Assembly: GCA_964247055.1 (NCBI GenBank)
Contig: OZ176053.1
Span: 10,292,001 to 10,356,000, forward strand
Reading direction: 5' to 3'
Length of the DNA stretch: 64,000 bases
Origin: Paragordius varius
Taxonomy: Eukaryota > Animalia > Nematomorpha
Positions within the stretch are counted from its first letter, which is position 1. Each line of letters starts with the position of its first letter. Positions 11,901 to 52,500 of this stretch are shown here, piece after piece. Under the pieces are notes generated by a model. It worked only from the letters and a program-made list of their open reading frames with translations. It was not told where the DNA came from and did not search any database. The translations under genes were made by a program, and so were the position numbers.

Positions 11901-14789
11901 TACACTACAGCCATCCGTCCCATCGTCACATACAGATCCGAATCCTGGCCGATGTCAAAAACAAATGAATCCAAACTCATAAACGCTGAATCCAAATTAT
12001 TGAAAACAATATTATTCGCAAATCCATCTAAATTCAATTATACCGAATCCTAAACCCGTACCTTATACTCAATCTCAACCCCATCAACAACGTCATCCTG
12101 GTCATGTTGAAGGACGGCAAGATACTTATATTCCCAAAACAATGAAATATTACTCGGTTGAACTACTAGCGAAATCCGGCCGACCCCATACCACATGGCT
12201 CAACACAAAAACAAAAGACCTCGAATCACTTAATTTAAATCTAGAATTAGCCAGAGCACGTAAAGATTGGAAAAAACGGGTGTACCGTCACATTTAATGG
12301 AGAATCCCCGTACAAATGAATGATGGTGAATGATGATGATTTTTGAAATTCCAATTAATATAATTTTTTCGAGGACATAATCAAATTTAAAATTTTTCAT
12401 ATTGATTTCGGCTTATTTTGACTGTTCCAAAATACCCACAAACCAATAAGTTTGCGGTAAGTTACACCCAACTTTAAAAAAGGATTATAAATTTTTAAGA
12501 CCGTAAAAGTTAATGTTAATCAAACTTGAGCCAATTAGTTAATAGCAATATTTAGCAAAAAAATTAATTATGAGCGGAAAGTGGGGTATTTATAGGGCTA
12601 GTTTATTGCAAATTTAAATCTTAGAAGAACTAAAATGCAAATATTATACGTGGACCACCAAAACCAAACCAAAAGTTTCGATGATATAAATGTTGATTAT
12701 TTGGATGATAATGTGAAGTCGGGCTTCGTTGAATAGCTCCAATACATTCATCATCAGTCGGTTTTACGACAAAAACTATGAAAAAACCTTGAGACGGGTA
12801 ATTGGCTTGCTATATTGTAAATATACATAAAGAGTTTCCGCATATATATATACTATACTTAATATTAAAATTATATAGACAAAATGTAAAAGCTAAAAGA
12901 ATAATATACCTTTAATAAAAAACAAATTTTTAATCTTAACATTTACAATTGTAAATCTTTAATTGAGTGTGTTAACAATTTAAATATTTATTCTTCCAAA
13001 GTTAATTTATATTAGAGTTAAAACATAATTGGTTGGATAATTGTGTTAATGATTGTCTAATTATTTGAATTAATTTAATTGAACTTAAAAAATAGTTTCT
13101 CTGAAATAATTAAGCTATTTTAGACTTATATTGTTGGATCAAGGTTTATAGTATAAGAATTAGTTAACCGAAATTGTAAATGCCGATTTGGTTAGCATTG
13201 ATTGGTATACACCTTCAAATTTGACAGTTTCCTCCAAATCAAATACTGGACACTATAACGAGTGATATATAATTAAAGTGTTACTAACAGCTTATTATAT
13301 TTTTTTTCCATATTTTTATATGTGAACTAACTCTTCAATTAAATATTCATTGTTATTTATATAAAGATTGATTTAAACAGTATCATTGACACCAAGGCCC
13401 AATCAAACCGTATTTCTCGAAATTTAATATTTCCGATTGGGAAATCTTTACTAATTACCTTATTGGATGAAAAAATAAGAACTTAAACAGTTATGATGAT
13501 ACAAAATCAAGATATATACTGGAACACTTTGAATCGACATGATTGCACACAAAGTGTCATTCGATGTGGCGACAAGCCGGACAGAAGGCGCTTCGCCATA
13601 TCGCTTGGGTGGGAAAGCGTATAAATATAGGATGGGTTGAGAGGGACTCACAGTAAATGTTACAATATCTCCAATACTATGCAAGTATGTAAAAAATGGA
13701 AAAAGAGTTCCAAATTTTATTTATGGTCATTTTATATTGAAATATTTTTTAGATCCATATACAGTTTATGGTCCCTTTTTTCTAGAAAATATATATTCAC
13801 CATATAAAAGGAGGCTTAAAACATTCGTCTGCCCAGTGCTGACAGTGTTGATGGAATAAATATGCAGTTAAGGTTTATGAGTTTAAAAAAATCGCTTTGG
13901 CATGGTTTCAGTCGGCTCTTTATCTAAGTTAGATACTGCACATAAGACATTGCGCTATATAATGTTTTACCTCCCCATTTGTAAATGATTACTTACAAAT
14001 AAAATAGGACATAATATTTTATATTATAGGATAAAGAGTTCCATTAAAAACAATTTTACCCTTCAATAAAAGATATGTTTACACAGGTTTTATATTATAT
14101 GGTTAATAAACAATTATTTGAGTTTATCAAAAGAAAAACTGTTAAAAAATATAAAAATCAATAATAGAAATAAATTATACCTTAAACGATAACCATTTAC
14201 CAGTGACAAGGATACGTTGAAAGTTATAGGTTCTGGAGAAGATCCAAACAATTGCACAATAATCTGTTCAAAATATTGATGTTGTGTTTTCATATTTCTA
14301 GCACGCTTTGTTACATTAATAAAATTTTCCTTAAACATAAATCTAAACTCCGCTTTGATCGACGAATTAAGGTTAGAGTCCGTGCATAGAGTTCGACTGA
14401 CTTCTTGGTAATATTCACTACATATAATTTGCTCATAATATATAGTTTTATGAAGATCATTTAAATTTTATAAAATATATGTACTTGGAAGATGATCTTT
14501 GTGGAATTTGTAATGTCGTTAATTGTGTCCCTCTGCGGATAACTGCAAAAATAGGATATTCCTTAACCACCGTCTTCGATGAGAGGTGTATTTTAAGAGA
14601 AAAATTCTTAAAAATATAGATAAAATCAACCTTATAGAGGTATGGTTCATACTCATAAATTAAAGTTATACCGCTTGAACTTGATATTTTTCGCTCATAG
14701 TTGACATTAAATGTTGCATTTTTAATGGAATCAGTATGGGTATAATTAAAAAATAAAAAACAAATTTTAATAAAAATTAGATATAGCAT
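2959..14789 (-). CDS. SIDT: SID-1 transmembrane family protein (SIDT1/2, CHUP-1-like), complete multi-exon gene
   Basis: More than 20 minus-strand exons give SIDT motifs in the correct order: signal-like [14 protein letters not shown] (ATG 14789), [39 protein letters not shown]1, [114 protein letters not shown]...[11 protein letters not shown] (3830-3717), last exon [20 protein letters not shown] (3021-2959). Exons of the TM1-TM2 loop (about 8600-8950) are only partly resolved. Confidence 0.95.
3072..3343. mobile_element. MITE family 1, copy B (in last SID-1 intron)
   Basis: Ends TATACCATT...ATGGTATA. The interior is the reverse complement of the interior of 581-879. Confidence 0.7.
5601..5806. 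mobile_element. MITE family 1, copy C (in SID-1 intron)
   Basis: Starts TATACCATTTAAAACTCAAATTCGCCC...TTCACCCTGAAAATAAATTATG like copy B; the right end is degenerate (TTTTAGGGTGAAT). Confidence 0.6.
6823..6871. repeat. (TA)n microsatellite
   Basis: Nearly perfect TA run in a SID-1 intron. Confidence 0.95.
10062..10121. repeat. (TA)n microsatellite
   Basis: About 30 TA units in a SID-1 intron. Confidence 0.95.
10690..12340 (+). mobile_element. Decayed 5'-truncated RTE-type non-LTR retrotransposon, antisense inside a SID-1 intron
   Basis: Frameshifted RT motifs: ALLKMK...[53 protein letters not shown] Cys/His finger CSIC-x10-CNYC-x4-H-KKC lies within the RT, and the 3' end is TGATGGTGAATGATGATGAT (short tandem tail typical of RTE). 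Located between SID-1 exons 12809-12650 and 10260-10180. Confidence 0.9.
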
Positions 14790-14858
14790 TTTAAAAAAAC
14801 ATATTGTTGTGTTGATTGACTTTATGCAAACATGAAAATTTGAACCCACGCTTTACCA

Positions 14859-49506: not shown

Positions 49507-52500
49507 CTTCTTTCATCCAAATTTAACAGGTAAGGATGCTGAAAATATTTTGTTGACTAAAGGAAAAAGTGGGGACTATTTAGTGAGACCCAGCGAGACA
49601 AATCCAGATAATTTTACTTTATCTGTTAGGTTTTAAATAAATTATTTTAGGGTTGATGACAAAGTTGTTCATATAAAAATTGTTAATAATGGTGAATATC
49701 TAAGTATTGGTTCCAATTCCGTAGAGGGCTTTGCTACATTGTCAGAACTGATAGATTTTTATAGCGATCCAGACCCAAATGCACCAAAAATAAAAGAAAA
49801 GCATGGTGATATAATTGAATTAAAATCTGTCTTACAATGCAATGATCAAATTTTTCAAAGGTTCGTATTTTTATTATGATGTTAAAATTATTTGTATAAT
49901 TATATTATATAACAGGATTAAAATAAAAAAAAATATTTGCCTAAAAAACTAACATAGCCCTTATCCACATTTTAAGATTTTATGTAAGTTTCCTAGAAAA
50001 ATATTGGATTTTACTATAATATTTACCTGATTTAAGTTGCACCAATTTTCATAATTTGCAGTGGATTAGCCCAAAATTATATTAATTTTATCATTTGGGA
50101 GTCTTTTCTTACTGTATTTGACCATGTATAGAGTCTTTCAAAGTTGGTACTTTTATTTAATTTTTGGATATTTTTAAAGCATATATTTCATTTTAACATG
50201 GTTTTCAAATTATCCATCGCATATGGAATCGAAATTAAATATTTTGCAGTAAAATATATCTATTATCTCAAAAATTCCTTACCTATTTTTTGTGATTTGT
50301 ATTTTTTTGGATAGCTGGTTCCACGGTGATATGAATGGTGGAACAGCTGAAAAACTTTTAAGCGAAAATGGGAGAGCCGGTTGTTTTTTAGTCCGAAGGA
50401 GTCAAACTAAAGCGGGCCGACTCGTGCTTAGCGTGTATTTAAGAACTAACCCATCAACCATCCCTCAATGTGACGGGTCGGCCATTAAGAAAGCTGGATT
50501 GTTTACACATCTTTACATAAATCACCAGGTATAGTTTATAGTTTATGGTTAAAATGGATTGGTGTGTATAGTTTTGTTGCAATAAACTGATATGATACGA
50601 GACCCTTACTCAATTTTTATTCGTTTACTATTTATCTACCTATGCGATAGATATTTCCTTTTTTTATTTTCGCAACATTATTTCATAAAACATTTCATTT
50701 ATATGCATTTAATGATAAAAATAAATATATTATTGTTTAATGTATTATCCGTTTTGTATTTCAATTTTTCAAAAAATGGTTATTAAGAGTATAATGTTAT
50801 GTTTTATTGGATCTAACGCGTACTCAATAACTCTAGCATTTTAAAGAATTATATATATTGTTTCACAAAACATTAATTAATTGCGGGTTTTAATTAAATA
50901 GATGATATTTTCATAATTCATAGAATGGTATGTATAACATTGGGGGTGAACCAAATTTTAAAGAACTCTCACAACTCATTGAATATTGCCAAGCTAATCC
51001 TTTGGTCGAAAACACTGGAGCCATCATCAGATTGACACATGTATGCCTAAATATTCACTTTTAGCGACTTTTGATATTTTGTCTTTAAATACTATAACCA
51101 TTATTTATTGAAATCAATAACAAATAATAACGGTACTTCATCTTTAAGACTATATATTGAGGCCTCCCATTTAATATCTTGATATTTTATATTACAAAAA
51201 AATCTGATTTTGCAATTTTAATTTGATTTTATTTAACTAATCGCTAATAAAATCATGCTTAAATTTTAATGACAATTTTTTAGTTGACCTTTAAAATCAA
51301 TTTTTGTATAAATAGATGGCTCATAAAATTTATTTATAAATAATACAGAAAGGGAAAAATTTATTATAAAAATTTATTTTTAACAATGGTTTTATGGTGC
51401 CAAAAATTTTATTGCATAGTTTTGGTTTTAATGAGTGTATATCAATAAAATTATTGATAGCAGAAAAAGAATTATTTTTTTGCCGCTCGAGTTTTTTGCA
51501 TTTTCTTAAATAAATTAATAATAATTTTTAAATGATTTCACAATCATTCATTTTATAAATAATAATTAATCATATCAACCTTTATAACAAACGAGTAAAA
51601 CTGATTTTTTTCATAGTCAATTCTTCGCTCTTTATTCATATATTGCCGGGAAGGATTTATAAGAATGCAATAAAAACTTTTGCATCAAATATAAAATATG
51701 CATGGGTGGTTTTAAAAAAACCCTCATATCAATTATTTTTTGTCAAATATAAAAAACACTATTGTTATATTTTATGCGTTTTATTAATTAATGTGCATAT
51801 GAGCATCAGCTATTTTTTATTGAATCTTGGAAGCTCCTAAAATTTTGAATGTCTAAGTTGCAAAAGTATCAAAATAAGTTATAAAGATAAACTATTTTAA
51901 CAAAATATTAATTATTTTTAGGATAATTTTCGGTAAAATACCCTTTAATCTATTTCATAAGTATAAAAATTTCACCGAAAAATGTTAAATAAATAATATT
52001 TTAGATTTTTTAATTCACAGTTCAAAATTAAAAATCAGAATTATCCGATTTTAATAGAACCACGTCTTTTATGTATAATCTATTTTTTTACTTTTTTAAA
52101 TTTAAGTATCTTCAAATTTTATATATAAAGATCATTTATTCATAAATTGCACATCATTTATATGTGACATAATTTTTTTATCTGTTAGCCCGTTTCAATA
52201 ACCACTATGCGGGCCAAATATTTACCAGAATATTTGAAGGGCAAACAGACCGTTATCGATACTGTTGATAAGGCACCCATGATAAATGATAACGCCCCTG
52301 ATCAATCCAAAAATAAAAAGAACATTGATAAAAACGAAAGAAGCGCTTTCACCGATGAATATGAGGTATATTTGGATATATATAGTTTTAAACAAAAACT
52401 ACCAATTGTTTAATTAAAATTATTTTTTAAGTTTTTTGGCTATATTTTATTAAATTTATCTTTTTGTTATAATGGAAGCTATGAGATTCAAAATATTTTT

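Follow-up and report, generated by a model that had tools for sequence, protein, structure and literature searches.

Can an animal spliceosome remove introns of only 21 to 25 nt, and if so, why would such introns lie near the starts of genes? The question is raised by a window of 64,000 nucleotides (the whole stretch of DNA that was analysed), in which a first-pass annotation had picked out six segments as ultra-short introns, one each in the genes for SID-1, a PDZ protein, a SETD2-like protein and PTPN11 and two in the gene for QDPR. We read the window sequence at the six places and found the description to be exact: each segment is 21-25 nt long with GT-AG termini, is A/T-rich and has an exonic G just upstream. 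Four of the six start with GTT, and an in-frame stop is present in three of the four whose length is a multiple of three.

Candidate introns in the window

Reading frame and homology together demand the excision of three of the six segments, i.e. both in QDPR and the one in PTPN11, and by these sequence criteria they are shown to be true introns. The segments in SID-1, PDZ and SETD2 are unverified and are kept here as candidate introns only. The features of the window that bear on this are as follows.

22472..22496, minus strand: QDPR intron 1, a micro-intron of 25 nt, phase 0, after codon 27; retention would cause a frameshift
22261..22284, minus strand: QDPR intron 2, a micro-intron of 24 nt, phase 1, after codon ~93, with in-frame TAA codons
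21044..22119, minus strand: QDPR intron 3, ~1.08 kb (~1076 nt), donor G/GTAAAT at 22119, acceptor approximate
49476..49506, plus strand: probable first intron of PTPN11, 31 nt, phase 2, absent from the first-pass annotation
49630..49650, plus strand: micro-intron of 21 nt in the N-SH2 region of PTPN11 (SHP2), with an in-frame TAA
14607..14630, minus strand: candidate 24-nt intron in the N-terminal exon of SID-1, GT-AG, in frame and stop-free
14876..14900, plus strand: candidate 25-nt intron of the PDZ gene, GT-AG, after a putative first coding exon of 17 nt
15093..15202, plus strand: intron of ~110 nt in the PDZ domain, of the ordinary short class, placed by a profile break between GIYVSK and IDEGSASD
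29706..29729, plus strand: candidate 24-nt intron, GT-AG, right after the putative ATG of the SETD2-like gene

Excision of QDPR intron 1, which lies between open frames 28 and 64 codons long, joins ...KSKLW to NVYNVDV..., and that of intron 2 makes the product colinear with human GNAKSKSLFKNCDL. The next coding open frame past intron 3 begins MIAYGMAKA... and occupies 20934-21056. Removal of the 21-nt intron of PTPN11 likewise gives a product colinear with human LSVRRNGAVTHIKI. Each of these excisions yields a gap-free length match to human QDPR or SHP2. The exon of PTPN11 that opens with FFHPNLTG lacks an in-frame ATG and lies directly behind TTTTAG; a splice of the form ATG-CT/GTATAA...TTTTAG/C would give M-L-F-F-H-P-N, in agreement with the start of SHP2, and hence 49476..49506 is probably the first intron of this gene. 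The introns then follow in the order 25, 24, ~1076, ~360 and ~88 nt in QDPR, and 31 (if this one is accepted), 21, ~450 and ~470 nt in PTPN11.

The other three segments have simpler readings. The one in SID-1 is in frame and stop-free and may thus equally encode eight residues; a comparison of the SID-1 N-terminal exon with Pfam and PDB gave no informative match covering the exon. The PDZ and SETD2 segments lie 0-14 nt past their putative ATGs. An in-frame ATG downstream, at ~14914, makes the PDZ candidate unnecessary, and the candidate in the SETD2-like gene is superfluous since the long open frame contains a start codon itself (ATG, 29742). The GT-AG and A/T-rich pattern by itself is weak evidence for an intron. 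We also scanned the window ab initio for A/T-rich GT-AG segments between open frames and obtained ~45 candidates; most of these are false and the PTPN11 micro-intron was missed, so such a scan is unusable as a stand-alone intron finder without homology.

Intron size classes in the genome

We collected an independent, hand-curated sample of 27 small-GTPase genes with 93 introns from the same A/T-rich genome, leaving out introns in poorly aligned termini. The aligner considered only GT-AG introns, and the termini are thus guaranteed by construction. The lengths fall at 21-39 nt (38 introns), 53-121 nt (13 introns) and at least 254 nt (42 introns). Of the shortest group, 37 are within 21-33 nt, and a single GTPase intron lies at 34-52 nt. 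Overall three classes coexist: micro-introns (mode 22-25 nt, range 21 to ~33-39 nt), introns of 50-140 nt, and introns of 0.25-3 kb. The annotation of the window had placed no intron with confidence between ~25 and 65 nt. The distinct short class that it described is recovered, while the empty gap is not: elsewhere in the genome lengths of 26-33 nt are common, and introns of 36, 39, 53, 53, 54 and 58 nt were found as well. The micro-introns make up 41% of the GTPase introns and ~6% (10/156) of those in seven longer gene families. With a median that far exceeds 50 nt for the GTPase introns, this is not a genome of ultra-short introns throughout, as a median below 30 nt would indicate.

Several observations suggest that the micro-introns are indeed spliced. 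Excision is essential to the frame for 31 of the 38 in the GTPase genes, 24 having a length that is not a multiple of three and seven a multiple of three with a stop; at the positions of the other seven, which are multiples of three and stop-free, homologues have no insertion. The Pfam profile coordinates are continuous across the micro-introns, which are 82% A+T within exons of 33-40% G+C. With joined translations as the alignment guide, the Rab35 introns of 23, 26 and 637 nt agree in codon and phase with introns that measure 72-90 nt in two further species. A search for same-species transcript products with the RhoA and Rab35 exons found none, the best identities being 87% and 73%, respectively. 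Taken at the sequence level, these data support the existence of a discrete ultra-short intron class in this genome.

Position of micro-introns along genes

The first intron is usually the longest one in animal genes. The present genome shares with this rule the dependence of length on position, but its micro class runs the other way. The window had been described as having its ultra-short introns confined to the 5' ends of genes; we found the enrichment to be real, with micro-introns upstream of the long ones, whereas the confinement does not hold. Position was counted from the start codon or coding start, so that "cap-proximal" here means proximal to the coding start.

Within the GTPase genes, a micro-intron precedes a long one in 21 pairs and follows it in two (permutation p = 8.5e-4), and over within-gene intron pairs the later intron is the longer in 87 and the shorter in 35 (p = 2e-4). 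The median distance past the P-loop is 41.5 residues for micro-introns versus 87 for long ones (MWU p = 9e-5). In 15 of 26 genes the shortest in-domain intron is the first one, versus 8.1 expected, and introns that come after a long one are long in 21 cases, short in three and micro in two. The seven longer families, for which lengths are estimates from profile coordinates and in which stop-free micro-introns of 3n length inside one exon match escape detection, give 9 micro-introns among the 45 introns up to profile position 120 and 1 among the 111 further on (Fisher p = 5.8e-5). The 41-140 nt class is unbiased in the same families, with 7/45 early versus 23/111 beyond (p = 0.51). We also considered whether profile matches that contain additional codons and internal stop codons could be micro-introns that had been read through; of 12 inspected, 7 proved to be alignment overhang into neighbouring introns or real protein insertions, and read-through cases were counted only after checking by eye. 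Unverified 5' candidates of this kind are located in adaptin (C4:12093467-12093865), myosin (C5:4362329-4362715) and proteasome (C1:6948764-6949147) genes. An apparent HSP70 intron of 165 nt (C6:5388071-5388231) lies inside one long open frame, may be a coding insertion, and was excluded.

The micro-introns form runs at the coding start, mostly within the first 100-150 codons; some compact genes have them throughout and no introns of another class. They extend to about codon 155 in RhoA, Rab11, Rab18 and a Rab8/10-like gene. Examples of such runs in the GTPase genes are 21, 21, 22, 22, 22 and 30, 27, 31 nt. Micro-introns adjoin one another within genes to a modest degree, as we counted 11 class changes along nine mixed genes versus 14.6 expected (p = 0.037). 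Exceptions to the 5' placement are a GTPase gene with introns of 23, 26, 1391 and 31 nt (C3:8846477), another in which an intron of ~1200 nt comes before one of 23 nt (C3:6596800), and a myosin intron of an estimated ~32 nt at profile position 316 (C5, about 4360286-4360301).

Splicing signals, explanations and known systems

Paramecium and other ciliates have tiny A/T-rich introns of 20-30 nt under NMD surveillance, among which stop-free introns of 3n length are depleted. The micro-introns here are similar in size and high A/T content but differ in the trace of surveillance. The in-frame stops of the window had been taken as a guard by NMD against retention, a view that our larger sample speaks against: 14 of the 38 GTPase micro-introns have 3n lengths where one third is expected (binomial p = 0.73), and seven of these 14 carry an in-frame stop, which is the chance level, as we calculated an expectation of ~0.5 for eight A/T-rich codons. 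The 5' splice sites of the micro-introns fit U1 slightly less well than those of long introns. The mean match to GTAAGT over six positions is 3.66 for micro-introns, 4.23 for short and 4.10 for long ones, and GTAAG is present in 1 of 38 micro-introns versus 7 of 41 long introns. A search for a branch-point motif in the micro-introns gave nothing conserved. The U1 5' end, ACTTACCTG, is canonical, and the genome has 17 matches to U1 and 46 to U2. With this canonical end and multiple copies of both RNAs, the spliceosome looks ordinary.

Our analysis suggests that these are probably genuine GT-AG spliceosomal micro-introns, forming a discrete class placed 5' ahead of the long introns, and that they may be handled by intron definition. 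Near the cap or promoter the splice sites would be paired across the intron, and introns there could lose sequence until they reach the physical minimum and would be kept free of insertions; those deeper in the transcription unit would be recognised across exons and be free to expand by transposon insertion. A stronger version is that the spliceosome accepts introns of 21-25 nt, close to the physical minimum, only while they lie within ~0.5 kb of the transcript start. Proximity to the cap or promoter would be the licence, and this position-dependent regime would have evolved independently of the flatworms and at sizes below 30 nt. We consider this version possible, though less likely than not.

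A competing account needs no special splicing mode. Deletion bias would shrink introns and transposons enlarge them, and selection would purge insertions near promoters. Transposon fragments are abundant in the long introns and in the window, and Rab35 looks like such a history, its 5' introns having gone from ~75 to 23-26 nt and its 3' intron to 637 nt; the canonical U1 and the absence of any detected micro-intron-specific motif also fit. This account leaves the sharp bounds at 21-33 nt and the trough at ~40-50 nt without explanation, as it does the absence of positional bias in the 50-140 nt class. The first intron is long in 7 of 24 GTPase genes, so insertions near the start are tolerated. 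We regard it as a serious contender, though the less probable one beside intron definition. It is very unlikely that the 5' bias results from pooling, with highly expressed or compact genes being tiny-introned throughout. The GTPase genes do differ strongly (five with micro-introns only, 10 with none and 11 mixed), but both within-gene permutations are significant with gene identity fixed, and the micro-introns of the long genes end at about 120 profile positions while long introns continue in the same genes. Least credible of all is that the segments are unspliced, i.e. coding insertions, pseudogene lesions or assembly errors: the seven stop-free 3n micro-introns of the GTPase genes and the three unverified segments of the window would allow it, but 24 of the 38 would frameshift highly conserved, otherwise intact genes, all run from GT to AG (as the aligner imposes) with the A/T-rich composition given above, and intron positions are common to other species.

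The layout takes a pattern known in flatworms further, to smaller introns, and is not the undescribed system that had been proposed, since 5'-clustered microintrons and bimodal lengths are already published for that group (PMC6530080, PMC4040987). In Opisthorchis felineus and other trematodes a short mode exists beside kb-sized introns, and the microintrons are clustered, preferentially at the 5' end; the same authors also propose intron definition over exon definition for flatworm microintrons (Ershov et al. 2019, PMC6530080). The discrete short mode, the 5' preference and, with modest support, the mutual adjacency are shared by the present genome. However, the flatworm modes are ~37 and 90 nt, with a microintron defined as below 75 nt (PMC6530080), whereas the mode here is 22-25 nt. 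The splice sites of flatworm microintrons are reported to be nearer to consensus, while our micro 5' sites fit U1 slightly worse, and the host probably belongs to a different phylum. Gyrodactylus salaris has modes of 32 and 58 nt, the shorter dominating positions 1-2 and the longer from position 3 on (Hahn et al. 2014, PMC4040987), and tapeworms have bimodal intron lengths (Tsai et al. 2013, as cited in PMC4040987). In both, as here, the shorter mode favours early ordinal positions, but the mean intron length drops with ordinal position in Gyrodactylus and rises along the GTPase genes here.

Animal introns below 30 nt are reported from only two lineages, the myxobolid myxozoans and Dicyema, where the genomes are compact and such introns, with medians of 22-27 nt, are the genome-wide norm (Hadjez et al. 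2026, PMC13644364). The micro-introns here share with them the GT-AG termini, the size, the reduced splice-site motifs and the tendency of short introns to neighbour short ones. They differ in being one class of three, placed 5' in genes that also contain kb-sized introns, and in belonging to a repeat-rich genome.

Introns of 22 nt and 3 kb within one gene, sorted by position, offer a natural system for studying the lower size limit of splicing, and bear on whether closeness to the cap or promoter licenses intron-defined splicing. A further question raised is why flatworms reached the same layout. Gene-prediction programs that require introns of at least 30-40 nt would disrupt many gene models of this genome at their 5' ends, and ~18% of the micro-introns, being stop-free and of 3n length, would be silently read as extra residues.

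Ultra-short introns in the window

The first-pass annotation had listed six GT-AG segments of 21-25 nt, in the genes for SID-1, a PDZ protein, QDPR (two), SETD2 and PTPN11, and its description of them is borne out by our data: each is rich in A/T and preceded by an exonic G, and GTT opens four of them. Three of the six, those in QDPR and PTPN11, are demonstrable introns; excision of each gives a protein colinear with human QDPR or SHP2. The PTPN11 exon starting FFHPNLTG lacks a start codon, and it is probably best completed by ATG-CT spliced across a 31-nt segment further upstream.

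Ultra-short introns of QDPR and PTPN11 (window positions)
22496-22472, minus strand: QDPR intron, 25 nt; retention shifts the frame
22284-22261: QDPR intron, 24 nt; in-frame stops inside
49630-49650: PTPN11 intron, 21 nt; in-frame stops inside
49476-49506, plus strand: probable first PTPN11 intron, 31 nt; ATG-CT/GTATAA...TTTTAG/C, giving M-L-F-F-H-P-N; absent from the first-pass list

The segment in SID-1 preserves the reading frame and contains no stop, and the exon holding it has no match in Pfam or PDB. In the PDZ and SETD2 genes the segment comes after a putative ATG that is dispensable, since the open frame has another ATG further downstream. These three segments are candidate introns. 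Scanning the window for segments of the same type between open frames gave ~45 matches, and the segment pattern by itself is weak evidence. The gene-internal order is as the annotation described, with ultra-short introns ahead of long ones: 25 and 24, then ~1076, 360 and 88 nt in QDPR, and 21, then ~450 and 470 nt in PTPN11. The 3' exons of SID-1 are separated by hundreds of bases.

The window spans C4:10292001-10356000; its G+C content is 24-36%, and an Rfam search of it returned no family at or above threshold. An HMMR (RHAMM)-like gene (45404-46849, plus strand) is apparently one 481-codon exon, starting MSFSRAPLKRFND and ending with an HMMR_C domain, and has no coding intron amid heavily interrupted neighbours. 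The stretches 10860-12300, 26100-26700, 42100-44730 and 47400-49230 have higher G+C and open frames overlapping on both strands, reverse-transcriptase-like ones among them; they are transposon debris, lying between and inside genes. A frame containing FHFYKYID is repeated at 26382-26654, 42399-42647 and 44251-44463.

Micro-introns in small-GTPase genes

We collected small-GTPase genes of the same genome with the Pfam profile PF00071 and aligned them using a purpose-written splice-aware protein-to-genome aligner, which admits only GT-AG introns, in all three phases and from 15 nt upward; the references were database proteins and three intronless paralogues of this genome. Introns in poorly aligned termini were left out by manual choice, and the final set has 27 genes and 93 introns. 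By length there are three classes, namely 38 micro-introns of 21-39 nt (37 of them 21-33, mode 22-25 nt), 13 short introns of 53-121 nt and 42 long introns of 254-3214 nt.

We found that the micro-introns form a discrete class; they come in runs where the coding region begins and precede the long introns. Introns as far as the first long one, that one included, number 36 micro, 10 short and 21 long, against 2, 3 and 21, respectively, downstream of a long intron. The micro fraction falls from 62% within the first 100 coding nt to ~25% past 300 nt, and the median distance after the P-loop is 41.5 residues for micro versus 87 for long introns (p = 9e-5). The shortest intron is the first in-domain one in 15 of 26 genes (8.1 expected). 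The annotation had held such introns to be confined to 5' ends; the enrichment ahead of long introns stands, but micro-introns also run along whole coding regions, as in RhoA (23, 24), Rab11 (22, 25, 24, 25), Rab18 (21, 21, 22, 22, 22) and a Rab8/10-like gene (27, 29, 28, 23), where the farthest lie 139 residues beyond the P-loop. In two genes a micro-intron lies downstream of a 1.2-1.4 kb intron, and ten genes lack micro-introns altogether.

We infer that introns near the cap or promoter may be spliced by intron definition, which would allow deletion down to a minimum size, while downstream introns would be exon-defined and so free to grow by insertion. The main rival to this mechanism is selection against insertions near promoters, acting without any special splicing mode. 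A pure gene-level effect, with no order within genes, is excluded since within-gene permutations are significant: of two introns in a gene, the more 3' one is the longer in 87 pairs and the shorter in 35 (p = 2e-4), and a micro-intron precedes a long one in 21 pairs and follows it in 2 (p = 8.5e-4).

That the micro-introns are an artefact is excluded by frame requirements and by intron positions common to other species. The length is not a multiple of three in 24 of the 38, and seven further ones of 3n length carry in-frame stops, so 31 are needed for an intact frame; the last seven sit where homologues have no insertion. Pfam coordinates are continuous over the micro-introns. The Rab35 introns of 23, 26 and 637 nt share codon and phase with introns of 80/78, 72/90 and 75/73 nt in L075/L076, genomic contigs of two other species (Logan SRR31433939 and SRR31186252; ~35% G+C). 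By this comparison, the 5' introns have become shorter in the present lineage and the 3' intron longer.

Rab35 lies directly downstream of a Cpn60_TCP1-family gene in both contigs (L075 2184-4012 and 6001-6339; L076 12-251 and 6001-6360), and 4/4 of its introns in L075 and 3/4 in L076 are 72-90 nt long. No coding-region intron is present in a Rap2-like gene (C1:9721372-9721860, L013), a Di-Ras-like gene (C3:8866076-8866555, L015) and an Arl-like gene (C10:1742396-1742872, L038), and the paralogues differ. The Arl-like gene has a twin with identical score at C11:1307111-1307587, which may be a duplicated contig or haplotig.

Longer gene families

For CCT, HSP70, kinesin, myosin head, proteasome, adaptin-N and HECT, the profile coordinates of the individual exons served to estimate how long the introns are, an estimator giving the same 23 nt (RhoA) and 25 nt (Rab11) as the aligner. 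We inspected the sequence in doubtful read-through cases. The counts are a hand tally, in which stop-free 3n micro-introns within an exon match escape detection.

Introns by profile position in the longer families
Micro (up to 40 nt): 9/45 in the first 120 positions, 1/111 beyond; Fisher p = 5.8e-5
Short (41-140 nt): 7/45 in the first 120 positions, 23/111 beyond; Fisher p = 0.51

The sole micro-intron past position 120 is at myosin position 316 (32 nt, as estimated from profile coordinates). None of the 17 introns in HECT domains, always C-terminal and in long proteins, is micro. Some myosin genes show the order long to short, so the positional dependence is limited to the micro class.

An HSP70 gene (C6:5387355-5389154, minus strand) has two profile matches 159 stop-free nt apart inside one 659-codon open frame; this stretch, at profile position 370, may encode an insertion of 53 residues and not be an intron. 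A Cpn60_TCP1 match with gapped profile pieces in a 590-codon open frame (C2:9804654-9809314, plus strand) appears to belong to a kinase of the PIKfyve/Fab1 type, as its chaperonin-like domain, and not to a CCT subunit; the 5' part of this gene has a ~36-nt intron.

Sequence features, related layouts and snRNAs

The GTPase micro-introns are 82% A+T, with G directly before the donor in 61%, T at position -3 in 79%, and donors GTA (71%) or GTT (29%). Their agreement with GTAAGT is slightly worse than that of long introns (3.66 versus 4.10 of six positions), and a search for a branch-point motif found none prominent. The first-pass suggestion that NMD guards against retention is unsupported, because 3n lengths are not depleted among these micro-introns (14/38, p = 0.73) and the stops, found in half of the 3n ones, are at the level of chance for eight A/T-rich codons.

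Berriman et al. in 2009 reportedly made a similar statement on intron layout for Schistosoma mansoni. Micro-introns at gene starts have already been published for flatworms (PMC6530080), and in Gyrodactylus salaris a 32-nt intron mode prevails at ordinal positions 1-2 (PMC4040987). A survey from 2026 covered 51 animal genomes, and introns <30 nt turned up solely in myxobolid myxozoans and Dicyema, where they are the genome-wide norm (PMC13644364). Introns are not mentioned in two hairworm genomics papers, one of which puts the G+C of Gordionus at 26.9%, near that of this genome.

The 5' end of U1 is canonical (ACTTACCTG), and U1 and U2 are both multi-copy. The 17 U1 matches, mostly inside 70 kb and many under the Rfam threshold, are genes and decayed copies clustered at C6:565331-633363 and C6:3718553-3733775. 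U2 has 46 matches, including a large array at C3:257436-527000 and further sites at C8:6857-12643, C6:8570-8760, C4:7260-8323 and C6:10102624-10107216; copies lie ~10 kb or less from the ends of several contigs, a placement suggestive of U2 arrays in subtelomeric regions.
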